Assembly (NCBI GenBank): GCA_051530055.1
Contig: CM121341.1
Coordinates: 434,001-498,000 of the forward strand
DNA length: 64,000 bases
Reading direction: 5' to 3'
From: Neoechinorhynchus agilis
Lineage: Eukaryota > Animalia > Acanthocephala
In this document: piece after piece, positions 1 through 35,944 of the stretch
How positions within the stretch are numbered: the stretch's first letter is position 1
How the letters are laid out: the number at the start of each line of letters is the position of its first letter
Notes under the pieces: model-generated
Told to the model about the DNA's origin: nothing
What the model saw: the letters and a program-made list of their open reading frames with translations, nothing else
The model's database searches: none
Made by a program: the position numbers and the translations under genes

Positions 1-1281
1 TACCTCATCAGTCGTCTAAAAAGTCTTTAATTGCTTTGTATTGTACTGCTTGGGTACGCGGGATCGCTATTCCCGAGGTTCGAAGACCCAATGTCCAACC
101 GAATCCTTAGCGTCCTTGATTGAGATAATTACGTCTCCAACAAAATCATTTCGAAGGAATTTTCTTAACGATACTGGAATCGGAGATGTGGAGGCCATAA
201 TCCCTTCCGGATAAAATCTATTTTATTGAAATATTTCGCAAGGATACCTCATCAGTCGTCTAAAAAGTCTTTAATTGCTTTGTATTGTACTGCTTGGGTA
301 CGCGGGATCGCTATTCCTAGGTTCGAAGACCAAATGTCCAACCGAATCCTTAGCGTCCTTGATTGAGATAATTACGTCTCCAACAAAACAATTTCGAAGG
401 AATTTTTCTTAACGATACTGGAATCGGAGATGTGGAGCCCATAATCCCTTCCGGATAAAACCTATTTCATTGAAATATTTCGCAAGGATACCTCATCAGT
501 CGTCTAAAAAGTCTTTAATTGCTTTGTATTGTACTGCTTGGGTACGCGGGATCGCTATTCCCGAGGTTCGAAGACCCAATGTCCAACCGAAATCCTTAGC
601 GTCCTTGATTGAGATAATTACGTCTCCAACAAAATAATTTCGAAGGAATTTTTCTTAACGATACTGGAATCGGAGATGTGGAGGCCATAATCCCTTCCGG
701 ATAAAATCTATTTTATTGAAATATTTCGCAAGGATACCTCATCAGTCGTCTAAAAAGTCTTTAATTGCTTTGTATTGTACTGCTTGGGTACGCGGGATCG
801 CTATTCCCGAGGTTCGAAGACCCAATATCCAACCGAATCCTTAGCGTCCTTGATTGAGATAATTACGTCTCCAACAAAATAATTTCGAAGGAATTTTTCT
901 TAACGATACTGGAATCGGAGATGTGGAGGCCATAATCCCTTCCGGATAAAATCTATTTTATTGAAATATTTCGCAAGGATACCTCATCAGTCGTCTAAAA
1001 AGTCTTTAATTGCTTTGTATTGTACTGCTTGGGTACGCGGGATCGCTATTCCCGAGGTTCGAAGACCCAATGTCCAACCGAATCCTTAGCGTCCTTGATT
1101 GAGATAATTACGTCTCCAACAAAATAATTTCGAAGGAATTTTTCTTAACGATACTGGAATCGGAGATGTGGAGGCCATAATCCCTTCCGGATAAAATCTA
1201 TTTTATTGAAATATTTCGCAAGGATACCTCATCAGTCGTCTAAAAAGTCTTTAATTGCTTTGTATTGTACTGCTTGGGTAC
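1..1281. repeat. Satellite array 1, about 245-bp unit, at least 5.2 copies, cut off by the window start
   Basis: TACCTCATCAGTCGTC recurs at 1, 245, 489, 735, 980 and 1225. Copies are near-identical. A diverged, internally deleted monomer-like stretch continues to about 1400. Confidence 0.97.
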
Positions 1282-1736
1282 TGGATTGTGATGACTACAT
1301 CTCCAGCTCTATCATCCCGAGTGGTGGGTGTGAGCCTTTTCGGATAACCGAAGTTTTCTAAACTATCGATCACCATTAGCATATCCTTCAGTTTTTGAAT
1401 TTTAAGGCATAAATTAACGTAGGTTTCCTTTCTTGTTAATTGGATGACTTTTTGAATCTGTCGAAGAGTAAAACATATGAAAAAATCGATTTTCTTAATT
1501 TCAAAGTACTTAAAGGAATCGCTTATGCATACCTTTTTATTTAAACTTTGTCTAAATTTTTCTGAGCGATCTTTATTTTATAAACGTGTAAATACTAGGT
1601 TATTGCATCTCTTCCTCGGCTTTTTAGTTTTCCTTTTTGGCATGAAGCCACACCGATCTCTTACATCAGAGAAGTGATTGAATCACTGAGACTCTTAATG
1701 CGACTACGGTATACGAGTTTGTACTCATCCTTCCGG

Positions 1737-4700
1737 AGAAGTTTAGTCATCAGAACTTAAGGGTAGTTATAAATAACTCGAAAATTGAACAAGGGACGAA
1801 ATTGTTGGAAAACCGAAGATAAAGCTACCGAATTCCATAGAAGTTTTTCCAGAAATTACAGATATTGCTAAAACCGAACAGAAGTTTAATCATCAGAACT
1901 TAAGGGTAGTTATAAATAACTCGAAAATTGAACAAGGGACGAAATTGTTGGAAAACCGAAGATAAAGCTACCGAATTCCTAGAAGTTTTTAGAGAAATTA
2001 CAGATATTGCTAAAAAAACCGAAAAGAAGTTTAATCATCAGAACTTAAGGGTAGTTATAAATAACTCGAAAATTGAACAAGGGACGAAATTGTTGGAAAA
2101 CCGAAGATAAAGCTACCGAATTCCTAGACGTTTTTCCAGAAATTACAGATATTGCTAAAACCGAACAGAAGTTTAATCATCAGAACTTAAGGGTAGTTAT
2201 AAATACCTCGAAAATTGAACAAGGGACGAAATTGTTGGAAAAACCGAAGATAAAGCTACCAGAATTCCTAGACGTTTTTCCAGAAATTACAGGTGATATT
2301 GCTAAAACCGAACAGAAGTTTAATCATCAGAACTTAAGGGTAGTTATAAATAACTCGAAAATTGAACAAGGGACGAAATTGTTGGAAAACCGAAGATAAG
2401 GCTACTGAATTCCTAGACGTTTTTCCAGAAATTACAGATATTGCTAAAACCGAACAGAAGTTTAATCATCAGAACTTAAGGGTAGTTATAAATAACTCGA
2501 AAATTGAACAAGGGACGAAATTGTTGGAAAACCGAAGATAAAGCTACCGAATTCCTAGACGTTTTTCCAGAAATTACAGATATTGCTAAAACCGAACAGA
2601 AGTTTAATCATCAGAACTTAAGGGTAGTTATCATAACTCGAAAATTGAACAAGGGATGAAATTGTTGGAAAACCAGAAGATAAAGCTACCGAATTCCTAG
2701 AAGTTTTTTCCAGAAAATTACAGATGTTGCTAAGGAAAACCGAACAGAAGTTTAATCATCAGAACTTGAGGGTAGTTACTAAATAACTCGAAAATTGAAC
2801 AAGGGACGAAATTGTTGGAAAACCGAAGATAAGGCTACCGAATTCCTAGAAGTTTTTCCAGAAATTACAGATATTGCTAAAACCGAACAGAAGTTTAATC
2901 ATCAGAACTTTGAGGTAGTTATAAATAACTCGAAAATTGAACAAGGGACGAAATTGTTGGAAAAACCGAAGATAAGGCTACCGAATTCCTAGAAGTTTTT
3001 CCAGAAATTACAGATATTGCTAAAACCGAACAGAAGTTTAATCATCAGAACTTAAGGGTAGTTATAAATAACTCGAAAATTGAACAAGGGACGAAATTGT
3101 TGGAAAACCGAAGATAAAGCTACCGAATTCCTAGACGTTTTTTCCAGAAATTACAGATATTGCTAAAACCGAACAGAAGTTTAATCATCAGAACTTAAGG
3201 GTAGTTATAAATAACTCGAAAATTGAACAAGGGACGAAATTGTTGGAAAACCGAAGATAAAGCTACCGAATTCCTAGAAGTTTTTCCAGAAACTACAGAT
3301 ATTGCTAAAACCGAACAGAAGTTTAATCATCAGAACTTAAGGGTGAGTTATAAATACCTCGAAAATTGAACAAGGGACGAAATTGTTGGAAAACCGAAGA
3401 TAAAGCTACCGAATTCCCTAGAAGTTTTTCCAGAAATTACAGATATTGCTAAAACCGAACAGAAGTTTAATCATCAGAACTTAAGGGTAGTTATAAATAA
3501 CTCGAAAATTGAACAAGGGACGAAATTGTTGAAAACCGAAGATAAAGCTACCGAATTCCCTAGAAGTTTTTCAAGAAATTACAGATATGTGCTAAAACCG
3601 AACAGAAGTTTAATCATCAGAACTTAAGGGTAGTTATAAATAACTCGAAAAGGTTGAACAAGGGACGAAAATTGTTGGAAAACCGAAGATAAAGCTACCG
3701 AATTCCTAGAAGTTTTTCAAGAAATTACTGAATATTGCTAAAACCGAACAGAAGTTTAATCATCAGAACTTAAGGGGAGTTATAACATACCTCGAAAATT
3801 GAACAAGGGACGAAATTGTTGGAAAAACCGAAGATAAAGCTACCGAATTCCCTAGAAGTTTTTCCAGAAATTACGGAAGATATGTGCTAAAAACCGAACA
3901 GAAGTTTAATCATCAGAACTTAAGGGTAGTCATAAATACCTCGAAAAATTGAACAAGGGACGAAATTGTTGGAAAAACCGAAGATAAGGCTACCGAATTC
4001 CTAGAAGTTTTTCAAGAAATTACAGATATTGCTAAAACCGAACAGAAGTTTAATCATCAGAACTTAAGGGTAGTTATAAATACCTCGAAAATTGAACAAG
4101 GGACGAAATTGTTGGCAAAACCGAAGATAAAGCTACCGAATTCATAGACGTTTTTCCAGAAACTACAGATATTGCTAAAACCGAACAGAAGTTTAATCAT
4201 CAGAACTTAAGGGTAGTTATAAATACCTCGAAAATTGAACAAGGGACAGAAATTGTTGGAAAAACCGAAGATAAAGCTACCGAATTCCTGAAGAAGTTTT
4301 TCAAGAAATTACAGATATTGCTGAAAACCGAACAGAAGTTTAATCATCAGAACTTAAGGGTGAGTTATAAACTACCTCGAAAATTGAACAAGGGACGAAA
4401 TTGTTGGAAAACCGAAGATAAAGCTACCGAATTCCCTGAAGTTTTTCCAGAAATTACAGATATTGCTAAAACCGAACAGAAGTTTAATCATCAGAACTTA
4501 AGGGGTAGTTATAAATAACTCGAAAATTGAACAAGGGACGAAATTGTTTGAAAACCGAAGATAAAGCTACCGAATTCCCTAGAAAGTTTTTCCAGAAATT
4601 ACAGATATTGCTAAAACCGAACAGAAGTTTAATCATCAGAACTTAAGGGTAGTTATAAATACCTCGAAAATTGAACAAGGGACGAAATTGTCTGGAAAAC

Positions 4701-7043
4701 CGAAGATAAAGCTACCGAATTCCTAGACGTTTTTCCAGAAATTACAGATATTGCTAAAACCGAACAGAAGTTTAATACATCAGAACTTAAGGGTAGTTAT
4801 AAATACCTCGAAAAATTGAACAAGGGACGAAATTGTTGGAAAACCGAAGATAAAGCTACCGAATTCCTGAGACGTTTTTCCAGAAACTACAGATATTGCA
4901 TAAAACCGAACAGAAGTTTAATCATCAGAACTTAAGGAGTAGTTATAAATACCTCGAAAATTGAACAAGGGACGAAATTGTTGGAAAACCGAAGATAGAG
5001 CTACCGAATTCCTAGAAGTTTTTCAAGAAATTACAGATATTGCTAAAACCGAACAGAAGTTTAATCATCAGAACTTAAGGGTAGTTATAAATACCTCGAA
5101 AATTGAACAAGGGACGAAATTGTTGGCAAACCGAAGATAAAGCTACCGAATTCCTAGACGTTTTTCCAGAAACTACAGATATTGCTAAAACCGAACAGAA
5201 GTTTAATCATCAGAACTTAAGGGTAGTTATAAATACCTCGAAAAATTGAACAAGGGACGAAAATTGTTGGAAAACCGAAGATAAAGCTACCGAATTCCTA
5301 GAAGTTTTTCCAAGAAATTACAGATATTGCTAAAACCGAACAGAAGTTTAATCTGATGCCAGAACTTAAGGGTAGTTATAAATACCTCAGAAAATTGAAC
5401 AAGGGACGAAATTGTTGGAAAACCGAAGATAAAGCATACCGAATTCCTAGACGCGTTTTCCAGAAATTACAGATATTGCTAAAACCGAACAGAAGTTTAG
5501 TCATCAGAACTTAAGGGTAGTTATAAAATAACCTCGAAAAATTGAACAAGGGACGAAATTGTTTGAAAACCGAAGATAAAGCTACCGAATTCCTAGACGT
5601 TTTTCCAGAAATTACAGATATTGCTAAAAACCGAACAGAAGTTTAATCATCAGAACTTAAGAGGTAGTTATAAATACCTGCGAAAATTGAACAAGGGACA
5701 GAAATTGTTGGAAAACCGAAGATAAAGCTACCGAATTCCTAGACGTTTTTCCAGAAATTACGAGTATATTGCTAGAAACCTAACAGAAGTTTAGTCATCA
5801 GAACTTAAGGGTAGTTATAAATAACTCGAAAATTGAACAAGGGACGAAATTGTTTGAGAAAAACCGAAGATAAAGCTACCGAATTCCTAGAAGTTTTTCA
5901 GAAATTACAGATATTGCTAAAACCGAACAGAAGTTTAATCATCAGAACTTAAGGGTAGTTATAAATAACTCGAAAATTGAACAAGGGACGAAATTGTATG
6001 TGAAAACACGAAGATAAAGCTACCGAATTCCTAGACAGTTTTTCAACGAAATTACAGATATTGCTAAAACCGAACAGAAGTTTAATCATAATGGAACTTA
6101 AGGGTAGTTATAAATAACTCGAAAATTGAACAAGGGACAGAAATGTGAAATTGTTGAAAACCGAAGATAAAGCTACCGAATTCCTAGACGTTTTTCCAGA
6201 AATTACAGATATTGCTAAAACCGAACAGAAGTTTAATCATCAGAACTAAAGGGTAGTTATAAATCACGCTCGAAAATTGAACAAGGGACGAAATTGTTGG
6301 AAAACCGAAGATAAAGCTACCGAATTCCTAGACAGTTTTTCCAGAAATTACAGATATGTGCTAAAACCGAACAGAAGTTTAATCATCAGAACTTAAGAGG
6401 TAGTTATAAATAACTCGAAAAAAATTGAACAAGGGACGAAATTGTTGGCAAAACCGAAGATAAAGCTAGCGAATTCTGAAACGTTTTTCCAGAAACTAGT
6501 AGATAGTTTGCTAAAACCGAACAGAAGTTTAATCATCAGAACCTTAAGGGTAGTTATAAATACTGCGAAAACTGGACAAGGGACGAAATTGTTGGAAAAC
6601 CAAAGATAAAGCTACCGAATTCCTAAAGTTTTTCCAGAAATTACAGATAATGCTAAAACCGAACAGAAGTTTAATCATCAGAACTTAAGGGTAGTTATAA
6701 ATACCTCGAAAATTGAACAAGGGACGAAATTGTTGGAAAACCGAAGATAAAGCTACCGAATTCCTAGACGTTTTTCCAGAAATTACAGATATTGCTAAAA
6801 CCGAACAGAAGTTTAATCATCAGAACTTAAGGGTAGTTATAAATAACTCGAAAATTGAACAAGGGACGAAATTGTTGGAAAACCGAAGATAAAGCTACCG
6901 AATTCCTAGACGTTTTTCCAGAAATTACAGATATTGCTAAAACCGAACAGAAGTTTAATCATCAGAACTTAAGGGTAGTTATAAATAACTCGAAAATTGA
7001 ACAAGGGACGAAATTGTTGGAAAACCGAAGATAAAGCTACCGA
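1737..7043. repeat. Satellite array 2, 142-bp unit, about 37 copies
   Basis: Unit AAAATTGAACAAGGGACGAAATTGTTGG...ATAAATAACTCG. Period 142 measured at 6883 and 7025. The repeated short ORFs in the track are by-products of the repeat. Confidence 0.98.
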
Positions 7044-9264
7044 TCGTAATAATTTTTAATGGTATTTTCGCCATCTTTCATCGGATCTTTGAATTTCATA
7101 CATGTAAGTTCATAAATAATATCATCGAGAGTGTTCTTAATATCCAGCCAGGTAATCTTCTTTTCACTTTGAGCAGCGGTGGACTCTACTGCGTGTCTCG
7201 CCATGTCGTAAAATCCAATAATATTCTTTAACATGCCAACTGCTTTATAGAATGGACAATACCTGCAAGAAACAATCACTAAAACAAGGTACAAATAAAT
7301 AACTACCTGTCGTAGGTAGAGTAACCGTTTTGCTGAAGATAATCCTCTTTTATCATCTTAGCAACTTCAAGCGTAATCTTGTCTGTTTCGTTCATATTCG
7401 CCTTTCCGACCAATTGAACAATCTCAGACAAGTCTTGTTCTTCTTGTAAGATTTCTTTACACTTTATGCGCAATTGTTCATGGAGTGAAGAGCAAAAAAA
7501 CAAACAAACCTTAGTCCGAAGGTCAATAAAACCGGGATAGTGGGTTTGATAGTACGGATCGAGTGTTCTTAGATATCGACTATAACTGACAAGCCAATTG
7601 ACAGATGGAAAGTGTTTCCTTTGTGCAAGTCTCTTGTCCAATCCCCAAAATACTTGAACGATTCCGAGAGTAGCCGAAGTGACTGGATCGGAATAATCGC
7701 CACCAGGAGGCGATACCGCGCCAACAATGGATACTGATCCGATTCGCTCGGGATTCCCTCCAATGCATTTCACTTTACCTGCTCTCTCGTAAAAAGAAGC
7801 AAGTCTTGCTCCGAGGTATGCCGGATAACCAGAATCAGCTGGCATCTCAGCTAGTCTGCCTGATATCTCTCTTAGAGCCTCTGCCCAACGTGAAGTCGAG
7901 TCAGCCATCATTGCGACATTGTAGCCCATATCACGGAAATACTCGGATATTGTGATTCCTATAGAATGGAAAGGGGACTATTTATTGAAAAGGGTATTGT
8001 CGGCGTGTTTTTTGTATAGCGACATGAATTGGTCGGATATTTGTAAATGATTATTTCGACTGATCATTAGTGCGCGGAATATAGATTAGGCTTACTCACA
8101 TCCATAGCTCACCTGTGTAAATGGAGGCTTCACGAGCAGCAACGGGCATGTTTGATGTATTGGCGACAAGAGCAGTTCGTTTCATGATTGATTCATCTAC
8201 GCCATTTTTGGCGGTTGTTAGCTTGAACATAGCAAAGTGGATATTATGTTTTCTGAAAGGAAACTTCGCGCGACACTAACCTTCGGAAAGTCTTTTAAAA
8301 CTTCGGCCATTTCATTTCCTCGTTCACCACATCCAACGTAGATTACGGTGTCACTGTTGCTGTACTTACTCAATGCCTGACTGATCACAGTCTTTCCACA
8401 ACCAAAAGCTCCAGGAATTGCAGTAGTACCACCTTGTACCGTTGGAAAGAGAACATCCAGGACACGTTGGCCAGTTATTAAAGGATCGCATGCATGGAGT
8501 TTTTCAGCAACTGGACGAGGAACACGAACTGGCCATACGTGGAACATTGAATGCTTCGTCGAATTAGAATTGAATTCTGTTTCTAGAACTGTATCGTTTA
8601 CTGAGTACCATCCACTAGGAGCCACATGCGTGACCTTTCCGTGCCTCTTAGGATGAACCATTATTGAATGAGTCATCAGTGAGTTTTCAATGACACTTCC
8701 AATTACATCGCCGCCAGTAACAAGGGAACCAACTTTACAGTTAGGATTAGGTACAAACTCCCATTCCTTTTTCCTATCCAAAGGGAGGGCTTCTATGCCT
8801 CTCTTGATGTATATGCTCTTCGTAATGTCGTAAATAAGATGCAATGGTCTTTGAATGCCATCGAAAATACTGCCCATTATACCAGGACCAAGTTCAACGG
8901 AGAGGGGCCGCTCTGTTCGCAGTACCGGATCGCCCACAGCTATTCCCGCTGTATCCTCATACGCTTGAATAATAGCCAAATCGTGATCAATGCGGATGAT
9001 CTCCCCAATCAACTCTTCGTGTCCTACTTTAACTAATTCAAACATGGATGCACCACTCATGTTCCCGGCGGTCACAACCGGTCCTGATACTCCATGAACA
9101 TATCCATATCGGGCTTCTGGTTGATCCTTTCCTCGCTCATATTCCAATCTTACTGACTCTTTTGTGTGCCCAAGACTTAACTGTTCAATTTGTTCCAATA
9201 CCGCTTTCGATTCAATGTCCTATCCGAAACAGTAAAAGGAAACGAAATCATTTACACTCACCAT
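7040..9264 (-). CDS. ATP6V1A: V-type H+-ATPase catalytic subunit A (multi-exon; 3' end runs into satellite 2)
   Basis: Motifs [67 protein letters not shown] and CPFYK. ATG at 9264-9262. GT-AG introns include 9261-9220 (42 nt), about 7510-7463 (in frame) and about 7306-7264. The last roughly 14 conserved residues are not found. Confidence 0.97.
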
Positions 9265-9875
9265 CGAAAATCTAAAATACGTATAATTTAAATGGTAAAA
9301 GATTGAGAAAAGCTCGTATCGCTCTGTGATTACAAACTAATTTATTCACTGAATCCATCAAGTTTCTTTAAAAGGATGAATAATCTAAAGTTTTATGTTT
9401 GTCTAAAGAAAAAATAATGGAAAAATTACTATTGATGTTAATTACTCAATTTCCCTTTGACCTCAATGGGATGACAAGTGGCGCCATCGAAATGCGTACT
9501 TATAGGAATCGCATTTAAAAACATTTATCGATTACTTTGTAGGTATATTAATGTAAGCAATCATAACATTTACTAATTTTAGTAAAGCTTTGTTCACTAA
9601 GAGATCGAAATAATAGGACGAAACCTTAAAATTCATGCCTTTTTTATACTTGGAAATATTCTCATTAAAATTTTAGTCACATTATAAAACAGTGATATCC
9701 TAATGAAATGCTTGAGATGTTTTTTAATTGTACCCATTTTCCCGCAATTCCACTATGCTATTGCGTGCTTTCGAGCAAGATGTGACGAACAGACGAAGCT
9801 TGAGTTGTGGGTTAGAAAAGCGTTGACGAAATTTTGCCACCACCCCTTAACTCGCTTTTAAAAATCAAACAATTT

Positions 9876-11752
9876 TCAAAATCTTCGACTGGATCGCTTC
9901 CGTCCAGTGTATTTGGTATCGGGTCGGACTTCCTTACCTTGTCGTCTCCATCTCGCCTTCTTTGACAAAACCCACTTTCTGGTGTTCTTGATCGGTTTCC
10001 GTTGCCGTTTTTCAATTTTTGACTCCGGTTCGTCGCAAATTACTTCAGCGGGAAGCTCGGGAATAACGTGTCCCATTCCGACGCAAAGTACTAGAAACAC
10101 TCTTAAAGATACGCAGAACGAATCATATTAAGCGCTAATTGAACTTACTTTTTGGCTCGAGTACTCTCCGGATTATCGATAACGAGACCTCCAGTAAATC
10201 CGGCTTTTAGTGCTTGTCTTGTCAGTAAGTTGGTTTGTTTGTCGTTTTCAGGGTAGAATTGAAACACACATCGGGTACCATTGGCCTAAAGAGAATTCTT
10301 TGAAAGAAGTTGGCTGATTGACTTACCATTACGGCATAAAGAGTAGTGAAGAAATGCAGAATACGGCGATGTGGAATGTCTGCCTTGTGATCTGAGTTAC
10401 ACAGCCATTGGAGAGCCGAAATACTAAAAGTATGTTAAACATAGTTCAAGTCGAACTTTGCACAACGAAAAACGAACGATAATTGAGAAATCTTTTTTAT
10501 TCTCCTGGATAGACGAAAATAAGATGTTTATGAAAACGAACTGAATGAAATAAAGTTCGACAATCGCCATCCTTGGCAATTTAAGCATAGTTTGGAACGG
10601 ATTTATAAACTAAGGAATCCATATCGGGATGGATTGGTACTGTAGTGCTAACGACGCAATGTGGATTTCCCCGATAAAATATTCAAATATTTCAATAATA
10701 GTCCATCGTGGAAATAATTATTATCAGCGGTGGCAATAATACAGAAACGAGGATGCAAACAAGCGATTGAATTGTTCGTGGTTGTTTATGCCGGTGAAAA
10801 ATTAAAGTGATTTTATTGATTCCAATTGTTTTCGGCGGCACAATCGTGTACGCGTTTATCACAAAGTTGTTGTTAAAGTGTTTTAGTCGTGTACCGAAAA
10901 CAATTGGAATCGAAAAAATCGCTTTAATTTTTCACCGGTATAAACAACCATGAACAATTCAATCGCTTCAAACATTACCGACATTTCACATTCCCCTTTT
11001 CGTATGAGCACTCGTAATCGCTCCTTTTTCCCCATTGTCCAATCTTGTCTCCGGATATCATAAAACCCGAAATGAACCTGAGGAAATAGCCAAAGCTTGA
11101 AACTCTCCTAAAACCCACCATCCTTCCTCCATTCGACTGGACCCGTCATCCACATTCTACGAGGACCCAGAGATGTATGGTTCCTTTGAACAATAATAAA
11201 ACGTGTTCTTATAATGTCGGAGGATAAAATTTTAGGAAAATGACCCGTGAGATAAGATTCAAATTTTCGCTCTTTCTCTCAGTACCTGATTGCACCGTCG
11301 AACATTCCCGGTCTAAAGGGCATTCCTGAGCCCATATCCAGGTTGATTAAGTCTCCCTCTACGCCCCTCTCCGAGGCCACTTGCAGCATATTTTGGCTAA
11401 TATCGAGCCCGATCCATCTATGTCCTCCGTTTTCAGTCAATACTTCACCGCTCAGACTTGATCCGCATCCAATGTCCAACAAAAAGCATGTTTCATCGGC
11501 TTTAAGGTTTAGGAGCTCAAGAGCTCGTTCACTCAGTTGCCGTTGAACCGTGATCATCCTTGAACTTTTTTTTTGATCGATTAAAAACACAATTCTTTTA
11601 AATTTACCATTGAGTGTACTTCCTCGCTTCGGTCTCACCGTAATACTATTCAATATGTGAAGAATTTGAAATCTTCGTTTTTGAGAGAGAGACACACGTA
11701 CCAATTCTGCCGGTCCAACGTGTTCCGGCCGTCTACTGCTGTGCTTTGGCAT
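9876..11752 (-). CDS. BUD23: 18S rRNA m7G methyltransferase BUD23/WBSCR22 (multi-exon)
   Basis: RRPEH.GP.EL, YYGETEARKY, LLDIGCGSSLSG, SISALQWLCN, FQFYPEN, AGFTGGLVIDNP and C-terminal RPDTKYTGRKR. Introns 11701-11646 and 11607-11565, a long intron about 11283-10430, and further short introns. Confidence 0.95.
10761..10968. mobile_element. MITE/fold-back-like element inside the long BUD23 intron
   Basis: About 70-bp imperfect terminal inverted repeat: AAGCGATTGAATTGTTCGTGGTTGTTTATGCCGGTGAAAAATTAAAG versus CTTTAATTTTTCACCGGTATAAACAACCATGAACAATTCAATCGCTT. No coding capacity. Confidence 0.8.
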
Positions 11753-12239
11753 CTACCCAACTCTGAGAAAAAGAAGGAAATCTTGAGTCCGTGGACATAA
11801 ACGAAAGAACTTCGTCTAAAGACGAAAAATCGGGTTTATCAATTCTAGCGCCTTTTATCGGATTTAGGACTTCTCTTAGTAGTCCGGCTCCTCAAAGTTT
11901 ATAATATTGAAAGAATCGTCTGCTCGTTTTCGCCAAAATCGACTGATTTAAGAAACGCACTTTGAAGCATTGCCGATGAAAGGAAAGTCCATTTCGCACA
12001 CATTGTGGGTTTGTTTTTAATCGCACGTTTATTTGTCGAAGGACCTATGGCTTTAGTTGTGTTTGAACCGTTCATAAATTGTTTTCCGCTTGAATTGGTT
12101 TCGGAAGTACGCATTTAGCACAGCATTGTTAGTTATCGTCGTAAGCTTACGGTACAATCTTGTCTACTTCCGAAACCAATCGGATTTTAAAAAAAAACCT
12201 GGATAATTTTTGAAATCCAATCTTCATCTCTCGACAATT

Positions 12240-12640
12240 AAAACACCACCTCCCGCCAAATTCCAGCTTTTGTCCTTCCTCGACCGTCGCCATCACGCTG
12301 GCAGCATTGCCTCGTTGTACTGCCAGCGAGATATTTTGTCGAAGGAATACGCCTGCTCTTGAGTCTCCGGTTGCCTTTCTCAATTTCTTCGAGAGATCCT
12401 GGAGCAGAGTGCCGAGCGCTCCATACGTCTCTACCCCAAAGGGGAATTTTCCTCCCTTCCGCTGCACTGGCGGCACCACCGGCGATTTCGAGGGAGTAGC
12501 GGATGTTACTGGCTGCGAGGGACGTGGCGTCCCAGAGAAGGCATTTGCCCTGCCGCCACGGGAAGACCGAAATTCCATCGGGCCTACGGCCGTCTAGTCT
12601 ACAGAGGTGGGCGGGTTCCTGGATGTTGGGGAACATTTCT
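12240..12640 (-). mobile_element. CRE-like non-LTR retrotransposon, 3' fragment (restriction-like endonuclease region), frameshifted
   Basis: EPAHLCRLDGRRPDGISVFPWRQGKCLLWDAT, then in another frame FPFGVETYGALG and FLRQNISLAVQRGNAASV. Confidence 0.85.
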
Positions 12641-15008: not shown

Positions 15009-15971
15009 TGTAGTGATGAATTGAGTATTTGCTAATGTTATCCAAGTAAGTTGGTCTGAAAGAGCTTTGGTGAAAATATGAGTGATGGGGAATTGGCTCT
15101 TCACAGTACGGGTATCTATAATCCGTTTATATAAGACTAATCAGTGCAGCCAATCAGAATCAAGGCAGTGCTAAACTCAATCTAGACACTTACAGTTGAT
15201 GGTCTGTCAATTTGTAAAACTAAACCTATAAATTTTTATTATTTATTAAATGCGTGGCTCAGCCGGTGACATTTATCAGCTTAAATGAAGTTATCAATAC
15301 ACGACTGATTTCTTGGGTATACAACCCAACAATTTGGTCGATCAGATAAAAGATGGTTTCGTTGCTGATATAAGAAATTTGTGTTAATCTAAATACCGCT
15401 GTCTTAATGCATTCATCTTCTATAAAGAAAGACAAATTAATGGATATCTTAAAGATGTAATCAAGAATATACGCCGTATATTACTGTAATTAAGATCCAT
15501 TAGTGGTACGCTTCTATTCATCATTCATTCATGCTGGCACATAGCAAAATCAATGAGTACCAGGCCTCCATTCATTTTAATCTAGACATCATGCAGCTCG
15601 ATTTTTATCGGTTCACAGTGCAAAAATTGTTTGTCGTAATTCGATGAGGCGCATTTGGAAACCGTTAATCTAATGTATGTTGGCCCCTAAAATCTAAATT
15701 ATACGCTTGGAAAAATAACATTTCCCAAAGATTATGTCATCTTTGATGTTATCATAATTTTGAAATTAACACAAATCACCCAAATACGATTGCGGAGAGC
15801 AACTTGTTCCTTGAAGTTTCAAGAGCTCGTGAAGTTTCGAAAAAGGCGGAAGAGAAGACCGAAAAATGGGAGAAATATAAATACCTCGATCCTTCGCTCT
15901 ACATTTTCTAAACCTCTCGCCATTGAGAAAATTGTTGCCGTCGAACCAAGCATCGCAAATTTTTTAACTAA

Positions 15972-18900
15972 CGATATGTGAGGTTCCGGGAAATGTGATT
16001 AGAATTATTGTTTAGGTCTTCACCCGGTAAATGATTACTTATTTAAGACGTTCTACGAACCTTGTCTGAAACAAACTTAGAACAATAATAATCAATGTCG
16101 ATATGTGAGGTTCCGGGAAATGTGATTAGAATTATTGTTTAGGTCTTCACCTTGTAAATGATTACTTATTTAAGACGTTCTACGAACCTTGTCTGAAACA
16201 AACTTACAACAATAATAATCAATGTCGATATGTGAGGTTTCGGGAAATGTGATTAGAATTATTGTTTAGGTCTTCACCCGGTAAATGATTATTTATTTAA
16301 GACGTTCTACGAACCTTGTCTGAAACAAACTTACAACAATAATAATCAATGTCGATATGTGAGGTTCCGGGAAATGTGATTAGAATTATTGTTTAGGTCT
16401 TCACCCGGTAAATGATTATTTATTTAAGACGTTCTACGAACCTTGTCTGAAACAAACAACAATAATAATCAATGTCGATATGTGAGGTTCCGGGAAATGT
16501 GATTAGAATTATTGTTTAGGTCTTCACCCGGTAAATGATTATTTATTTAAGACGTTCTACGAACCTTGTCTGAAACAAACTTACAACAATAATAATCAAT
16601 GTCGATATGTGAGGTTCCGGGAAATGTGATTAGAATTATTGTTTAGGTCTTCACCCGGTAAATGATTACTTATTTAAGACGTTCTACGAACCTTGTCTGA
16701 AACAAACTTACAACAATAATAATCAATGTCGATATGTGAGGTTCCGGGAAATGTGATTAGAATTATTGTTTAGGTCTTCACCCGGTAAATGATTATTTAT
16801 TTAAGACGTTCTACGAACCTTGTCTGAAACAAACTTACAACAATAATAATCAATGTCGATATGTGAGGTTCCGGGAAATGTGATTAGAATTATTGTTTAG
16901 GTCTTCACCCGGTAAATGATTATTTATTTAAGACGTTCTACGAACCTTGTCTGAAACAAACTTACAACAATAATAATCAATGTCGATATGTGAGGTTCCG
17001 GGAAATGTGATTAGAATTATTGTTTAGGTCTTCACCCGGTAAATGATTATTTATTTAAGACGTTCTACGAACCTTGTCTGAAACAAACTTACAACAATAA
17101 TAATCAATGTCGATATGTGAGGTTCCGGGAAATGTGATTAGAATTATTGTTTAGGTCTTCACCCGGTAAATGATTACTTATTTAAGACGTTCTACGAACC
17201 TTGTCTGAAACAAACTTACAACAATAATAATCAATGTCGATATGTGAGGTTCCGGGAAATGTGATTAGAATTATTGTTTAGGTCTTCACCCGGTAAATGA
17301 TTATTTATTTAAGACGTTCTACGAACCTTGTCTGAAACAAACTTACAACAATAATAATCAATGTCGATATGTGAGGTTCCGGGAAATGTGATTAGAATTA
17401 TTGTTTAGGTCTTCACCCGGTAAATGATTATTTTTTAAGACGTTCTACGAACCTTGTCTGAAACAAACAACAATAATAATCAATGTCGATATGTGAGGTT
17501 CCGGGAAATGTGATTAGAATTATTGTTTAGGTCTTCACCTTGTAAATGATTATTTATTTAAGACGTTCTACGAACCTTGTCTGAAACAAACTTACAACAA
17601 TAATAATCAATGTCGATATGTGAGGTTCCGGGAAATGTGATTAGAATTATTGTTTAGGTCTTCACCTTGTAAATGATTATTTATTTAAGACGTTCTACGA
17701 ACCTTGTCTGAAACAAACTTACAACAATAATAATCAATGTCGATATGTGAGGTTCCGGGAAATGTGATTAGAATTATTGTTTAGGTCTTCACCCGGTAAA
17801 TGATTACTTATTTAAGACGTTCTACGAACCTTGTCTGAAACAAACTTACAACAATAATAATCAATGTCGATATGTGAGGTTCCGGGAAATGTGATTAGAA
17901 TTATTGTTTAGGTCTTCACCCGGTAAATGATTATTTATTTAAGACGTTCTACGAACCTTGTCTGAAACAAACTTACAACAATAATAATCAATGTCGATAT
18001 GTGAGGTTCCGGGAAATGTGATTAGAATTATTGTTTAGGTCTTCACCCGGTAAATGATTACTTATTTAAGACGTTCTACGAACCTTGTCTGAAACAAACT
18101 TACAACAATAATAATCAATGTCGATATGTGAGGTTCCGGGAAATGTGATTAGAATTATTGTTTAGGTCTTCACCCGGTAAATGATTATTTATTTAAGACG
18201 TTCTACGAACCTTGTCTGAAACAAACTTACAACAATAATAATCAATGTCGATATGTGAGGTTCCGGGAAATGTGATTAGAATTATTGTTTAGGTCTTCAC
18301 CCGGTAAATGATTACTTATTTAAGACGTTCTACGAACCTTGTCTGAAACAAACTTACAACAATAATAATCAATGTCGATATGTGAGGTTCCGGGAAATGT
18401 GATTAGAATTATTGTTTAGGTCTTCACCCGGTAAATGATTACTTATTTAAGACGTTCTACGAACCTTGTCTGAAACAAACTTACAACAATAATAATCAAT
18501 GTCGATATGTGAGGTTCCGGGAAATGTGATTAGAATTATTGTTTAGGTCTTCACCCGGTAAATGATTACTTATTTAAGACGTTCTACGAACCTTGTCTGA
18601 AACAAACTTACAACAATAATAATCAATGTCGATATGTGAGGTTCCGGGAAATGTGATTAGAATTATTGTTTAGGTCTTCACGGAAATGATTACTTTTAAG
18701 ACGTTCTACGAACCTTGTCTGAAACAAACAACAATAATAATCAATGTCGATATGTGAGGTTCCGGGAAATGTGATTAGAATTATTGTTTAGGTCTTCACC
18801 CGGTAAATGATTATTTATTTAAGACGTTCTACGAACCTTGTCTGAAACAAACAACAATAATAATCAATGTCGATATGTGAGGTTCCGGGAAATGTGATTA

Positions 18901-20214
18901 GAATTATTGTTTAGGTCTTCACCCGGTAAATGATTATTTATTTAAGACGTTCTACGAACCTTGTCTGAAACAAACTTACAACAATAATAATCAATGTCGA
19001 TATGTGAGGTTCCGGGAAATGTGATTAGAATTATTGTTTAGGTCTTCACCTTGTAAATGATTATTTATTTAAGACGTTCTACGAACCTTGTCTGAAACAA
19101 ACTTACAACAATAATAATCAATGTCGATATGTGAGGTTCCGGGAAATGTGATTAGAATTATTGTTTAGGTCTTCACCCGGTAAATGATTATTTATTTAAG
19201 ACGTTCTACGAACCTTGTCTGAAACAAACTTACAACAATAATAATCAATGTCGATATGTGAGGTTCCGGGAAATGTGATTAGAATTATTGTTTAGGTCTT
19301 CACCCGGTAAATGATTACTTATTTAAGACGTTCTACGAACCTTGTCTGAAACAAACTTACAACAATAATAATCAATGTCGATATGTGAGGTTCCGGGAAA
19401 TGTGATTAGAATTATTGTTTAGGTCTTCACCCGGTAAATGATTATTTATTTAAGACGTTCTACGAACCTTGTCTGAAACAAACTTACAACAATAATAATC
19501 AATGTCGATATGTGAGGTTTCGGGAAATGTGATTAGAATTATTGTTTAGGTCTTCACCCGGTAAATGATTATTTATTTAAGACGTTCTACGAACCTTGTC
19601 TGAAACAAACTTACAACAATAATAATCAATGTCGATATGTGAGGTTCCGGGAAATGTGATTAGAATTATTGTTTAGGTCTTCACCTTGTAAATGATTATT
19701 TATTTAAGACGTTCTACGAACCTTGTCTGAAACAAACTTACAACAATAATAATCAATGTCGATATGTGAGGTTTCGGGAAATGTGATTAGAATTATTGTT
19801 TAGGTCTTCACCCGGTAAATGATTATTTATTTAAGACGTTCTACGAACCTTGTCTGAAACAAACTTACAACAATAATAATCAATGTCGATATGTGAGGTT
19901 CCGGGAAATGTGATTAGAATTATTGTTTAGGTCTTCACCTTGTAAATGATTATTTATTTAAGACGTTCTACGAACCTTGTCTGAAACAAACTTACAACAA
20001 TAATAATCAATGTCGATATGTGAGGTTCCGGGAAATGTGATTAGAATTATTGTTTAGGTCTTCACCTTGTAAATGATTATTTATTTAAGACGTTCTACGA
20101 ACCTTGTCTGAAACAAACTTACAACAATAATAATCAATGTCGATATGTGAGGTTTCGGGAAATGTGATTAGAATTATTGTTTAGGTCTTCACCCGGTAAA
20201 TGATTACTTATTTA
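15972..20214. repeat. Satellite array 3, 127-bp unit, about 33 copies
   Basis: CGATATGTGAGG recurs at 15972, 16099 and onward. A few recurrent variants (CCCGG/CCTTG, TTACTT/TTATTT, 3-bp deletion). Confidence 0.98.
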
Positions 20215-20287
20215 CGAAGAAGTTGTTGAAACGAAGCTATAAATAGCTCGGAATAGCGACCTTTCAAGGAGCTATTTATTTGATATT

Positions 20288-20557
20288 TTACAAGACGGTA
20301 TCTTTGCCTTGCTCGAGTGCTGAATGTTCTTGAATACGCAAAGCTACTCGCCTCACAAGCGAAGAAAACATATGAGCGCAGTTGTCAACACAACTCTCTT
20401 CATTTCTCGTAAGACTCTTCGATTTCATCGATTTGATACAATCCGTAAAACATGTCTGAGAAACTTCGTTGCAGAAAATCATTAATCCTTGAATTTGTTT
20501 AGACAAAATGAACTGGTTCGCATTAGAATCTGCAGTGGGCATCGAAGGCTGCTGCAT
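20288..20557 (-). CDS. Mitochondrial small Tim chaperone, Tim9-like
   Basis: 89 aa with twin CX3C motif (QTCFTDC...ESCVDNC) and a Tim9-like tail RVALRIQE. Confidence 0.85.
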   Translation of the reverse strand: MQQPSMPTADSNANQFILSKQIQGLMIFCNEVSQTCFTDCIKSMKSKSLTRNEESCVDNCAHMFSSLVRRVALRIQEHSALEQGKDTVL

Positions 20558-21260
20558 CTAAAATTGATTAGATACAATGGATTCCTTCACTAAAATAATC
20601 ATACAAATTACCAACTAAAATCACAACGCCCCTTTAAATCAGTCAGAGCGTACACAAAATAAGATGATTTCTCTGGGCTTTAGTCCTTTCTACTCGTCCA
20701 AAAGTCAGCAAATCTACAATTAAAAGCTTACAATTTTTTACGGTCTTAGCAGAAACGCAACTTTTTTGTTGCATTCCTGATAAAACCAAATGAAAAATAG
20801 CCCATATCAAATGCTGGTGATTAAAAAAAATTTCCTCCTAATCTTTTTTAGCAGAAATTCAACTCTGCGAAATCAGGAAAATTTAGCAGTCGAACATCGG
20901 GATAGAATCTTCACGGTCGGTTATCTGGAAGAAGAAAGGTTTCTTCTAATCAAGAGAAATGTGAATTAACGACAGCAACCAAATGCTCCTCTGGTTTTCT
21001 TAATGCCTTACCAATACCGTCGTTCGGTACTAAAATGGATGAGCGCTTCCCAAATCGGCAGCCATTCGTTCTCGTCTCGAATCGGTCGGTTTAAGCAGAG
21101 ATGACGACTAAAGACCGGACGACGTTAAATCCTAGATTTTATCCAACGACGAAATTCGCGGTTGTTGTCCTAAGAAAGTTAAATGGAACTGCATAAATCT
21201 GGAGGTAATAACTTTTTCAGTCAAAAAGGACTTTAGGTTGTGAATCAAAAATAAAAATCC

Positions 21261-24200
21261 TTTATATACACGGCCGAATGGACACACAGTCCACCGATTT
21301 CGGTCTGGAAGCGCTGATCTGCGCTCAATGCACCAAGACCGGACGATTATAAGTTTGTACATCCCGCCGGATTCTAGGATACCTCCCGAGGACGCGGGAC
21401 TCATCATTGAGTTTCCTCTTCCCTTCAGCGGTATTTCGTCCCCTTTGATGTGCATCATTGGCGGTTACGGATTCCAACCCGTTGACCCTTTACTGGAATT
21501 TGGAGCATTAGTCCACTTGACCACCTCGGCACAACTTCGGAATGTACAAACTTCGCCACTTTAGCCTGAATAAGCTTTCCAATTTTTAGAATTTTTTATA
21601 AATGTGGTTCAGCCGGTCGTCTTTTGATTGATATTTTTTATATACACGGCCGAATGGACACACAGTCCACCGATTTCGGTCTGGAAGCGCTGATCTGCGC
21701 TCAATGCACCAAGACCGGACGATTATAAGTTTGTAAATCCCGCCGGTTCTAGGATACCTCCCGAGGACGCGGGACTCATCATTGAGTTTCCTCTTCCCTT
21801 CAGCAGTATTTCGTCCCCTTTGATGTGCATCATTGGCGGTTACGGATTCCAATCCGTTGACCCTTAACTGGAATTTGGAGCATTAGTCAATGACCACCTC
21901 GGCAAAACTTCGGAATGTACAAACTTCGCCACTTTAGCCTGAATAAGCTTTCCAATTTTTAGAATTTTTTATAAATGTGGTTCAGCCGGTCGTCTTTTGA
22001 TTGATATTTTTTATATACACGGCCGAATGGACACACAGTCCACCGATTTCGGTCTGGAAGCGCTGATCTGCGCTCAATGCACCAAGACCGGACGATTATA
22101 AGTTTGTAAATCCCGCCGGATTCTAGGATACCTCCCGAGGACGCGGGACTCATCATTGAGTTTCCTCTTCCCTTCAGCAGTATTTCGTCCCCTTTGATGT
22201 GCATCATTGGCGGTTACGGATTCCAACCGTTGACCCTTAACTGGAATTTGGAGCATTAGTCAACTTGACCACCTCAAAACTTCGGAATGTACAAACTTCG
22301 CCACTTTAGCCTGAATAAGCTTTCCAATTTTTAGAATTTTTTTATAAATGTGGTTCAGCCGGTCGTCTTTTGATTGATATTTTTTATATACACGGCCGAA
22401 TGGACACACAGTCCACCGATTTCGGTCTGGAAGTGCTGATCTGCGCTCAATGTCCCAGGACCGGACGATTATAAGTTTGTAAATCCCGCCGGATTCTAGG
22501 ATACCTCCCGAGGACGCGGGACTCATCATTGAGTTTCCTCTTCCCTTCAGCAGTATTTCGTCCCCTTTGATGTGCATCATTGGCGGTTACGGATTCCAAT
22601 CCGTTGACCCTTAACTGGAATTTGGAGCATTAGTCAACTTGACCACCTCGGCAAAACTTCGGAATGTACAAACTTCGCCACTTTAGCCTGAATAAGCTTT
22701 CCAATTTTTAGAATTTTTTATAAATGTGGTTCAGCCGGTCGTCTTTTGATTGATATTTTTTATATACACGGCCGAATGGACACACAGTCCACCGATTTCG
22801 GTCTGAAGTGCTGATCTGCGCTCAATGTCCCAGGACGGACGATTATAGTTTTAAACCGCCGGATTCTAGGATACCTCCCGAGGACGCGGGACTCATCATT
22901 GAGTTTCCTCTTCCCTTCAGCAGTATTTCGTCCCCTTTGATGTGCATCATTGGCGGTTACGGATTCCAATCCGTTGACCCTTAACTGGAATTTGGAGCAT
23001 TAGTCAACTTGACCACCTCGGCAAAACTTCGGAATGTACAAACTTCGCCACTTTAGCCTGAATAAGCTTTCCAATTTTTAGAATTTTTTATAAATGTGGT
23101 TCAGCCGGTCGTCTTTTGATTGATATTTTTTATATACACGGCCGAATGGACACACAGTCCACCGATTTCGGTCTGGAAGCGCTGATCTGCGCTCAATGCA
23201 CCAAGACCGGACGATTATAAGTTTGTAAATCCCGCCGGATTCTAGGATACCTCCCGAGACGCGGGACTCATCATTGAGTTTCCTCTTCCCTTCAGCAGTA
23301 TTTCGTCCCCTTTGATGTGCATCATTGGCGGTTACGGATTCCAATCCGTTGACCCTTAACTGGAATTTGGAGCATTAGTCAACTTGACCACCTCGGCAAA
23401 ACTTCGGAATGTACAAACTTCGCCACTTTAGCCTGAATAAGCTTTCCAATTTTTAGAATTTTTTATAAATGTGGTTCAGCCGGTCGTCTTTTGATTGATA
23501 TTTTTTATATACACGGCCGAATGGACACACAGTCCACCGATTTCGGTCTGGAAGGCTGATCTGCGCTCAATGCCAGACCGGACGATTATAAGTTTGTAAT
23601 CCCGCCGGATTCTAGGATAAGGCGGGACTCATCATTGAGTTTCCTCCCCTTCAGCTATTTCGTCCCCTTTGATGTGCATCATTGGCGGTTACGGATTCCA
23701 ATCCGTTGACCTTTACTGGAATTTGGAGCATTAGTCAACTTGACCACCTCGGCAAAACTTCGGAATGTACAAACTTCTTAGCCTGATAAGCTTTCCAATT
23801 TTTAGAATTTTTTATAAATGTGGTTCAGCCGGTCGTCTTTTGATTGATATTTTTTATATACACGGCCGAATGGACACACAGTCCACCGATTTCGGTCTGG
23901 AAGCGCTGATCTGCGCTCAATGCCCCAAGACCGGACGATTATAAGTTTGTAAATCCCGCCGGATTCTAGGATACCTCCCGAGGACGCGGGACTCATCATT
24001 GAGTTTCCTCTTCCCTTCAGCAGTATTTCGTCCCCTTTGATGTGCATCATTGGCGGTTACGGATTCCAATCCGTTGACCCTTAACTGGAATTTGGAGCAT
24101 TAGTCAATGACCACCTCGGCAAAACTTCGGAATTACAAACTTCGCCACTTTAGCCTGAATAAGCTTTCCAATTTTTAGAATTTTTTATAAATGTGGTTCA

Positions 24201-26545
24201 GCCGGTCGTCTTTTGATTGATATTTTTTATATACACGGCCGAATGGACACACAGTCCACCGATTTCGGTCTGGAAGTGCTGATCTGCGCTCAATGTCCCA
24301 GGACCGGACGATTATAAGTTTGTAAATCCCGCCGGATTCTAGGATACCTCCCGAGGACGCGGGACTCATCATTGAGTTTCCTCTTCCCTTCAGCAGTATT
24401 TCGTCCCCTTTGATGTGCATCATTGGCGGTTACGGATTCCAATCCGTTGACCCTTAACTGGAATTTGGAGCATTAGTCAACTTGACCACCTCGGCAAAAC
24501 TTCGGAATGTACAAACTTCGCCACTTTAGCCTGAATAAGCTTTCCAATTTTTAGAATTTTTTTATAAATGTGTCAGCCGGTCGTCTTTTGATTGATATTT
24601 TTTATATACACGGCCGAATGGACACACAGTCCACCGATTTCGGTCTGGAAGTGCTGATCTGCGCTCAATGTCCCAAGACCGGACGATTATAAGTTTGTAA
24701 ATCCCGCCGGATTCTAGGATACCTCCCGAGGACGCGGGACTCATCATTGAGTTTCCTCTTCCCTTCAGCAGTATTTCGTCCCCTTTGATGTGCATCATTG
24801 GCGGTTACGGATTCCAATCCGTTGACCCTTTACTGGAATTTGGAGCATTAGTCAACTTGACCACCTCGGCAAAACTTCGGAATGTACAAACTTCGCCACT
24901 TTAGCCTGAATAAGCTTTCCAATTTTTAGAATTTTTTATAAATGTGGTTCAGCCGGTCGTCTTTTGATTGATATTTTTTATATACACGGCCGAATGGACA
25001 CACAGTCCACCGATTTCGGTCTGGAAGCGCTGATCTGCGCTCAATGCACCAAGACCGGACGATTATAAGTTTGTAAATCCCGCCGGATTCTAGGATACCT
25101 CCCGAGGACGCGGGACTCATCCTCTTCCCTTCAGCAGTATTTCGTCCCCTTTGATGTGCATCATTGGCGGTTACGGATTCCAATCCGTTGACCCTTAACT
25201 GGAATTTGGAGCATTAGTCAACTTGACCACCTCGGCAAAACTTCGGAATGTACAAACTTCGCCACTTTAGCCTGAATAAGCTTTCCAATTTTTAGAATTT
25301 TTTATAAATGTGGTTCAGCCGGTCGTCTTTTGATTGATATTTTTTATATACACGGCCGAATGGACACACAGTCCACCGATTTCGGTCTGGAAGTGCTGAT
25401 CTGCGCTCAATGTCCCAGGACCGGACGATTATAAGTTTGTAAATCCCGCCGGATTCTAGGATACCTCCCGAGGACGCGGGACTCATCATTGAGTTTCCTC
25501 TTCCCTTCAGCAGTATTTCGTCCCCTTTGATGTGCATCATTGGCGGTTACGGATTCCAATCCGTTGACCCTTAACTGGAATTTGGAGCATTAGTCAACTT
25601 GACCACCTCGGCAAAACTTCGGAATGTACAAACTTCGCCACTTTAGCCTGAATAAGCTTTCCAATTTTTAGAATTTTTTATAAATGTGGTTCAGCCGGTC
25701 GTCTTTTGATTGATATTTTTTATATACACGGCCGAATGGACACAGTCCACCGATTTCTCTGGAAGTGCTGATCTGCGCTCAATGCCCAGGACCGGACGAT
25801 TATAAGTTTGTAAATCCCGCCGGATTCTAGGATACCTCCCGAGGACGCGGGACTCATCATTGAGTTTCCTCTTCCCTTCAGCAGTATTTCGTCCCCTTTG
25901 ATGTGCATCATTGGCGGTTACGGATTCAATCCGTTGACCCTTAACTGGAATTTGGAGCATTAGTCAACTTGACCACCTCGGCAAAACTTCGGAATGTACA
26001 AACTTCGCCACTTTGCCTGAATAAGCTTTCCAATTTTTAGAATTTTTTATAAATGTGGTTCAGCCGGTCGTCTTTTGATTGATATTTTTTATATACACGG
26101 CCGAATGGACACACAGTCCACCGATTTCGGTCTGGAAGCGCTGATCTGCGCTCAATGTCCCAGGACCGGACGATTATAAGTTTGTAAATCCCGCCGGATT
26201 CTAGGATACCTCCCGAGGACGCGGGACTCATCATTGAGTTTCCTCTTCCCTTCAGCGGTATTTCGTCCCCTTTGATGTGCATCATTGGCGGTTACGGATT
26301 CCAATCCGTTGACCCTTAACTGGAATTTGGAGCATTAGTCAACTTGACCACCTCGGCAAAACTTCGGAATGTACAAACTTCGCCACTTTAGCCTGAATAA
26401 GCTTTCCAATTTTTAGAATTTTTTATAAATGTGGTAGAGCCGGTCGTCTTTTGATTGATATTTTTTATATACACGGCCGAATGGACACACAGTCCACCGA
26501 TTTCGGTCTGGGAAGCGCTGGTCTGCGCTCAATGCACCAAGACCG
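21261..26545. repeat. Satellite array 4, about 373-bp unit, about 14 copies
   Basis: TTTATATACACGGCCGAATGG recurs at 21261, 21637, 22010 and onward. The first copy is the most diverged. Confidence 0.98.
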
Positions 26546-35300: not shown

Positions 35301-35944
35301 ATCAAATATTAAAATATATTCATTATGGGCAATGCCTAAAATACGAAATAAAAGGACTATTCATGCTTTAACCAGCAAAAAATAGCCTGTATCCTATCAG
35401 CTAAAATATAAAAAGCGTGGCAAAATACACTCATTTGTGTATCTTAAAGGTATTATTTACCATGCGTGGGTTACCTACAAAAATTCTAAGTATGGAGATC
35501 ATTCTTTGTCGACATGGTTCTTTATACCTGAATCAATAAATTCTCCATCGACAAAAACACTAATTTTTACACTCATCATAAGCGAAAACTAAACATTTTT
35601 ATCGGTTTTATTTTGCCATGAATATTATTATGATTCACGCGCAATCCCCAAGAAATAGTCTTGGTCGAAACTGAGATCTTTTCCTACTAAATCAACTTCA
35701 TCCGCCGTTTGACAACTGCCAACCTCGTTTTCAATACAAAATTTATCATTAAGAAGGTACTCTGTTTTGTTTGTCATCTTTTGAGCAATCGGTGTTTCAC
35801 TGTTCAACAAACTGTCGATCGTAATTTTCAACACATTTCGATTTATTCCCATCACAGAAACCAAATTGTCCTCGGATATAATGCAGTTTTCGCAAAGTGC
35901 CTTGAATACGGCCATTTGAAGAAATGTTAAGCGGATTTTGTGAC
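34355..35944. repeat. Left arm of a 1,590-bp inverted duplication
   Basis: Reverse complement of 40516-42105. Identical ORFs appear in mirror image in the track. Confidence 0.95.

Follow-up and report, generated by a model that had tools for sequence, protein, structure and literature searches.

The tandem arrays described here lie at the start of a 64 kb stretch of the genome of Neoechinorhynchus agilis, an acanthocephalan parasitic in mullets, and their closest described counterpart is the Cast group of satellites in Tribolium castaneum. The euchromatic satellites Cast1-Cast9 have units of 100-400 bp, form arrays that reach more than 10 kb, and reside in gene-rich, transposon-poor regions (Volaric et al., 2024; PMC11610590). 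Each Cast family is present as many arrays on several chromosomes, some with poly(A)/(T) tracts at their junctions, and no monomer phase is preferred at the array ends; spread via circular DNA and transposons has been proposed for these satellites, in a history of repeated seeding followed by elongation and homogenization (PMC11610590). The stretch that we analyzed as a whole, hereafter the window, is CM121341.1:434001-498000 of assembly GCA_051530055.1 and belongs to a 19.4 Mb chromosome; together with a further 62 kb from three paralogous permease loci (L002, L003 and L004), it makes up a genome sample of about 126 kb, to which all statements on the genome in this work refer. As in Tribolium, the arrays of N. 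agilis are built of 100-400 bp units, extend over several kb and are located in gene-rich sequence; the lack of a preferred phase where arrays end and the proposed history are further points in common. Unlike the Cast satellites, each family was met at one locus in the sample, and no junction motif was seen. The genome of N. agilis is also far more compact than that of Tribolium, with the consequence that its arrays touch exons.

Three other kinds of tandem arrays deserve comparison. First, tandem repeats inside miniature inverted-repeat transposable elements (MITEs), foldback elements and Helitron/Helentron elements have been described in bivalves and insects. Two arrays of N. agilis recall this arrangement, namely a 116 bp array of L003 (a 21 kb locus at 4.35 Mb of the same chromosome), which is enclosed in a unit with inverted ends of about 60 bp, and the fourth array of the window, which stems from a dispersed repeat. 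In contrast with transposon-borne arrays, the four window arrays have neither inverted ends nor target duplications, and comparison of the left with the right flank of arrays 2-4, over 700 bp each, revealed no such features and no carrier sequence or carrier ends beyond chance. Second, the intronic and intergenic macrosatellites and variable number tandem repeats (VNTRs) of vertebrates are locus-specific, often intronic, originate by local duplication and change in size by unequal exchange. Compared with these, the density in N. agilis is much higher, with arrays taking up a quarter of the window and a quarter of L003. Finally, hammerhead satellites and metazoan retrozymes, such as Sm-alpha of Schistosoma and satellite 2 of newts, consist of tandem units of 150-400 bp. 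The tandem units are alike, and array 4 loosely resembles a short interspersed element (SINE), but no ribozyme or tRNA structure was detected in the N. agilis arrays.

Within the same phylum, the satellitome of Acanthocephalus comprises species-specific families; the probes tabulated include monomers of about 250-400 bp and others that exceed 2 kb (PMC11758010). That survey combined read clustering with fluorescence in situ hybridization (FISH), without sequence context, and the position of the arrays relative to genes was not studied (PMC11758010). Seen beside these systems, the arrays of N. agilis are real, striking in their density and of a known kind. We consider, with moderate confidence, that they are ordinary satellite or tandem-repeat arrays in a gene-rich part of a compact genome, recurrently seeded and subsequently shaped by unequal exchange. 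The locus shows the amount of satellite DNA that a very compact genome tolerates beside essential genes.

Four Unrelated Arrays at the Start of the Window

Arrays were called with Tandem Repeats Finder (TRF), and their monomer spacing and end pieces were established by anchored segmentation. The original prediction, made from the sequence of the window, held that four unrelated arrays fill about 16 of its first 26.5 kb, and both parts of this statement are correct. By TRF, the arrays sum to 16,116 of the 26,545 bp at the window start. Array 1 (1-1281) runs off the start of the window and holds 5.2 copies of a 245 bp unit, 97-100% identical to their consensus. Array 2 (1737-7043), which is A-rich on the plus strand, is made of units of 142-145 bp, counted as 37 copies by TRF and resolved by segmentation into 36 full copies and a 95 bp end piece. 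Array 3 (15972-20214) contains 33.4 copies of a 127 bp unit (33 copies and a 74 bp end piece), and array 4 (21261-26545) contains 14.2 copies of a 375 bp unit (14 copies and an 82 bp end piece). Borders are sharp and units are arranged head to tail, with regular spacing in the three complete arrays. Their units longer than 100 bp, their extent of more than 1 kb and the high similarity of copies within each array are those of satellite DNA.

The four consensus monomers share no similarity with one another or with the remaining 37 kb of the window, and arrays 1-3 have neither a second locus nor detectable relatives in the 126 kb read. No monomer-like sequence was found in the array flanks; an apparent match of array 1 to its own right flank falls within the range obtained with shuffled sequence and was discarded. 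The sole other tandem repeat of the window is a short one at 60811-61099, with 1.8 copies of a 159 bp unit that are 89% identical.

Homogeneity is high throughout. Copies are 87-100% identical to their own consensus across all arrays, the mean pairwise identity is 91.6% in array 2, 97.9% in array 3 and 96.3% in array 4, and edge copies are not more diverged than interior ones. Lag analysis with permutation disclosed no higher-order repeat and no period at multiples of the monomer (family-wise P of 0.16-0.76). Variants shared between copies are randomly scattered along the arrays, with no neighbor effect, which argues for unequal exchange or conversion repeated many times and against a single burst.

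Five Further Repeats at a Second Locus

Neither L002 nor L004 contains arrays. L003 contains five tandem repeats, which are unrelated to each other and to the arrays of the window. Two of them are cut by the limits of the locus, one at its start (6.5 copies of 256 bp, L003 1-1654) and one at its end (2 copies of 370 bp, L003 20114-20858). A third, with 6.3 copies of 116 bp (L003 2831-3561), shows six identical copies within the unit with inverted ends mentioned above (L003 2615-3603), and its monomer includes part of one of these ends; judged by its sequence, this tandem array is of MITE-like origin. The fourth (L003 7939-8751) lies over the last coding part of a YEATS4-like gene and consists of exactly two copies of 406 bp (2.0 by TRF), which are 99% identical and include coding sequence. 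It is a fresh duplication in place, with the appearance of a newborn array. Young arrays, this two-copy newborn among them, offer material for studying how satellites begin.

The fifth repeat, with 11.8 copies of 169 bp (L003 5377-7365), is located within an intron of the YEATS4/GAS41 orthologue (L003 5017-8538). This intron measures 2,252 nt; the array starts 35 nt past the GT donor and stops 228 nt before the AG acceptor, and the joined exons align unbroken to residues 24-161 of human YEATS4 (E = 7e-32). An open reading frame (ORF) that stops at an array can thus be the end of an exon. Because the array occupies the intron, the public annotation presents the gene as two models, of 113 aa and 183 aa. 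Intronic arrays split gene models: YEATS4 appears in two parts, a Tim10-like gene of the window is uncalled, and no V-ATPase A protein could be retrieved. Since arrays break gene models in this manner, the counts of "missing" core genes in acanthocephalans may partly be an annotation effect. Together with the question of how V-ATPase A ends, this splitting is the most useful by-product of the analysis.

Seeding, Growth and Copy Number

The mechanism that we propose involves three steps. First, each array would be seeded independently, either when a short sequence, local or contributed by a transposon, is duplicated in tandem or by an inserted concatemer. Second, unequal exchange between sister chromatids, together with replication slippage and gene conversion, would enlarge the arrays and keep their copies alike. 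Finally, they would survive only where they do little harm, that is in introns and short intergenic spacers, and such survival would leave them pressed against the ends of exons and genes. Repeated local amplification near transcription ends had been put forward for this locus. Its first element stands, as arrays do arise repeatedly, L003 adding unrelated repeats and among them the 406 bp repeat with its 2.0 copies; its second, that the process acts at transcription ends, is not supported by the nine tandem repeats judged for position (the four window arrays and the five of L003).

Four points weigh against recurrent seeding followed by unequal exchange. First, the multi-copy arrays all have non-integer copy numbers, namely 36.7, 33.4 and 14.2 for arrays 2-4 and 11.8 for the 169 bp array of L003. 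Simple duplication in place should yield whole numbers; arrays 2-4 do not show them, and the 406 bp repeat of L003 does. Second, four of five end pieces measure 74-95 bp, a pattern for which we have no explanation and on which we do not rely. Each complete array had been described as beginning and ending with the same short segment of similar length. Partial end copies of 95, 74 and 82 bp are indeed present (the post-hoc chance of such similar lengths is about 0.02), and the 116 bp array of L003 adds one of about 74 bp when its diverged last copy is counted; the similarity does not extend to the 169 bp array of that locus, which terminates in a piece of about 130-142 bp. Third, the one-locus status of each family rests on about 126 kb of genome. 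Finally, the end of V-ATPase A, discussed below, could be either truncated or spliced to a distant exon.

Non-integer copy numbers also imply that ready-made concatemers may have been inserted, unless the borders were trimmed later. A possible, though rather unlikely, alternative is that such concatemers, generated as rolling-circle products of extrachromosomal circular DNA (eccDNA) from another array of the same family, were inserted at chromosome breaks. In its favor, the borders are sharp and arbitrary, the flanks share no similarity with the monomers, and array 2 interrupts a conserved reading frame on one side and a dispersed repeat on the opposite side, which is what an insertion or a rearrangement would produce; the Cast satellites, for which this model was put forward, also provide a precedent (PMC11610590). 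However, no second locus was encountered for any of the four families in the 126 kb read, no direct sign of rolling-circle replication or of concatemer insertion was found, and the 406 bp repeat demonstrates that whole-number duplication in place occurs in the same genome. Moreover, many later exchanges would be needed anyway to account for the scattered shared variants.

The V-ATPase A Gene and the Borders of Array 2

Array 2 had been described as abutting the 3' end of the gene for the V-ATPase catalytic subunit A, whose exons occupy 7044-9198 on the minus strand, with a 44 nt intron at 7259-7302 (donor AG|GTAGTT at 7302). This description has to be revised. Of the 617 residues of human ATP6V1A, the alignment covers none past residue 601; it stops precisely at base 7043, about 16 conserved codons short of the normal end, and the arginine codon CGG and TAG stop that close the ORF (7037-7042, minus strand) are both array-2 sequence. 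Among animal relatives, the conserved tail ..QxAFRNLED hardly varies, and it is encoded nowhere in the window according to tblastn and to a profile run over the six reading frames.

Array sequence may now supply the end of the protein, with an ATTAAA about 85 nt downstream in every monomer; if so, this would be an unusual change in a nearly invariant protein tail. Alternatively, the bases at the end of the ORF also read CG|GTAGCT, a possible splice donor similar to AG|GTAGTT, the gene's own, and may thus lead to a last exon situated beyond the window. Two candidates for a last exon to the left of array 2 were considered and rejected. The first, ..RRIKSLSDSITSLM*, lies within a dispersed repeat. 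The second, ..KLKDMLMVIDSLEN, reaches a tail-profile score of 8.4, against 15.5-23 for the 12 top matches in other parts of the window, and has no in-frame acceptor.

The sequence to the left of array 2 consists of two parts. The first is a unique spacer that follows array 1 (1282-1605) and has no recognizable V-ATPase tail; an open minus-strand frame had been reported to enter array 1, and such an ORF does start in this spacer and run into the array. The second is a fragment of a dispersed repeat of about 130 bp (1606-1736), which is not gene sequence, is truncated precisely where array 2 starts and has copies at L003 15633-15725, L003 16179-16258 and L002 5975-6017.

That the arrays are in part artefacts of assembly, either with wrong lengths or with a misjoin or collapse at array 2 that removed the last exon of V-ATPase A, appears improbable to us. 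Nanopore and Illumina reads and a few HiFi reads, all of pooled worms, went into a hybrid assembly made with MaSuRCA, and Hi-C was used for scaffolding (PMC12690905). The lengths of the arrays are to be taken as approximate. The absence of the conserved tail from the window and of any N. agilis V-ATPase A from the results of a protein search would also fit such an error. Nevertheless, the arrays contain structured variants and indels instead of perfect copies, their 4-5 kb correspond to about the minimum read length of 5 kb kept for the assembly, and an array of the same type is found in a clean intron context in L003. The best protein matches to V-ATPase A are only 80% identical, and no close relative for a comparison with an empty site was found.

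Array Positions and Gene Ends

The genes said to separate the arrays were confirmed by Pfam or PDB as V-ATPase A, a Bud23-like methyltransferase, a member of the Tim10/DDP family and an SLC7-type permease. The Tim10/DDP-family gene (20288-20557, minus strand) is a single exon of 89 aa with its stop codon at 20288-20290 and an AATAAA 12 nt past the stop. Array 3 had been placed next to the stop codon of a Tim9-like gene; it ends 73 nt from the stop of this gene, now identified as Tim10-like, with the AATAAA in between, and the likely poly(A) site is about 25-50 nt from the array border. The assertion that array 3 starts at the end of a plus-strand ORF was also accurate, the stop codon of the ORF at 15760-15981 being inside the array. 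A palindrome, AGCTATAAATAGCT, with an inverted partner nearby, is located at 20230-20262, in the interval that separates array 3 from the poly(A) signal of the Tim10-like gene.

Array 4 occupies most of the spacer between the diverging Tim10-like and permease genes; its distance to the start codon is 704 bp on the Tim10-like side and 936 bp on the side of the permease as annotated. Being upstream of both start codons, it fills a 5'-5' spacer and not a 3' end. Three of the nine repeats are placed in this way in 5' spacers (array 4 and the 116 bp and 370 bp repeats of L003). One lies in an intron (YEATS4), one interrupts the frame of V-ATPase A, one is found just past a poly(A) signal (array 3), one overlies the final coding portion of a gene, and two have no assignable context. 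The link of arrays to gene 3' ends that formed the core of the original prediction is thus not supported, array 3 being the only window array just past a 3' end. Introns in V-ATPase A and Bud23 are 44-57 nt long, and with introns as short as 44 nt and spacers below 1 kb, any non-coding site is close to the end of an exon or a gene. We infer that the apparent 3'-end link is the product of crowding and of exon ends taken for gene ends.

Arrays could instead be made preferentially at transcript ends or splice donors by a process coupled to such sites, for instance through breaks from transcription-replication clashes or through R-loops. Several borders would agree with it, since array 3 lies just past the Tim10-like poly(A) signal, array 2 begins at the possible donor CG|GTAGCT, a distance of 35 nt separates a donor in L003 from the start of the 169 bp array, and the 406 bp duplication covers the 3' end of a gene. 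We nonetheless regard it as very improbable: array 4 and the 116 bp and 370 bp repeats of L003 are all upstream of genes, chance alone would bring borders near exon ends where introns measure 44 nt and spacers fall short of a kilobase, and a test would require more than nine tandem repeats. A slim chance is also all that we grant to a broader proposal, according to which the genome would have an unusually high output of locus-specific 100-400 bp arrays, amounting to thousands of one-locus families located preferentially in very short introns beside donors and past poly(A) sites. If true, it would point to a break-and-amplify process coupled to transcription or splicing and able to replace the end of the essential V-ATPase A.

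A Dispersed Repeat as the Source of Array 4

Dispersed copies at L003 15695-16347 and L002 19930-19992 match positions 83-303 of the array 4 monomer with 70-80% identity. In L003, this sequence is joined to the segment that adjoins array 2 in the window (1606-1736). Array 4 is therefore an amplified piece of a dispersed repeat, and by sequence comparison it belongs to the same repeat family as the 130 bp next to array 2. Occurrence of copies at unrelated loci, as expected of a SINE, is thus observed for array-4-like sequence in L003 and L002. The array 4 monomer is absent from metagenome contigs.

Inspection by eye drew attention to CUGAUGA and GACGAAA motifs in arrays 1, 2 and 4, and to a box-A-like and T-arm-like stretch on the minus strand of array 4. 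Searches with Rfam returned no hammerhead, other ribozyme or tRNA in the arrays, whether at the gathering score or, for short stretches, at E<=10. Lowering the thresholds of ARAGORN to 70% likewise gave no tRNA in array 4. The hammerhead or retrozyme interpretation of motifs seen by eye and the tRNA-like head of array 4 were both rejected for lack of such matches. Spread via RNA of ribozyme-bearing or SINE-like transcribed repeats, the RNA-mediated route that had been contemplated for these arrays, could draw on the motifs and on the dispersal of array-4-like sequence, but with no support from Rfam or ARAGORN, and with motifs whose strands or order do not permit a hammerhead core, it is largely refuted and merits almost no credence.

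Other Genes and Repeats

The Bud23/WBSCR22-like methyltransferase gene (9876-11752, minus strand) has six exons separated by GT-AG introns and encodes an intact product of 275 aa, as reconstructed by splicing and matched with Pfam and PDB. No gene is called in the public annotation between window positions 17481 and 27480, and the Tim10-like gene is consequently missing from it; no public record was found for the Tim10-like ORF, nor for an ORF of 322 aa. The first annotated gene model, ACOME3_000038 (27481-28375, plus strand), belongs to the SLC7-type amino-acid permease; a permease exon of the window is 100% identical to this N. agilis protein, and window 17481-38375 is identical to the locus that contains it. 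This permease (window 27481-29323) has at least four paralogues with 65-71% identity at the DNA level, the copies of L002, L003 and L004 being located at about 10001-11900, and every paralogue is annotated as two adjacent gene models.

A fragment of a dispersed retroelement-like repeat (12147-12636, minus strand) has copies in L002, in L004 and at window 47605-47710. A reverse-transcriptase fragment (RVT_1) is present at window 47540-49484; the two are related retroelement pieces, with copies in L002 and L004. Three long ORFs on the minus strand at window 35628-39804 probably form one gene and total 979 aa; they contain no Pfam domain and have no homologue at E<=1e-3 among 5.8 billion proteins. 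Lastly, the segments at window 34355-35944 and 40516-42105 constitute a 1.59 kb inverted duplicate, 99.9% identical and carrying ORFs of 130 aa and 112 aa, of which a 75% identical copy resides at L004 12769-13562. This duplicate may be a transposon with long inverted ends or may represent two inverted copies.

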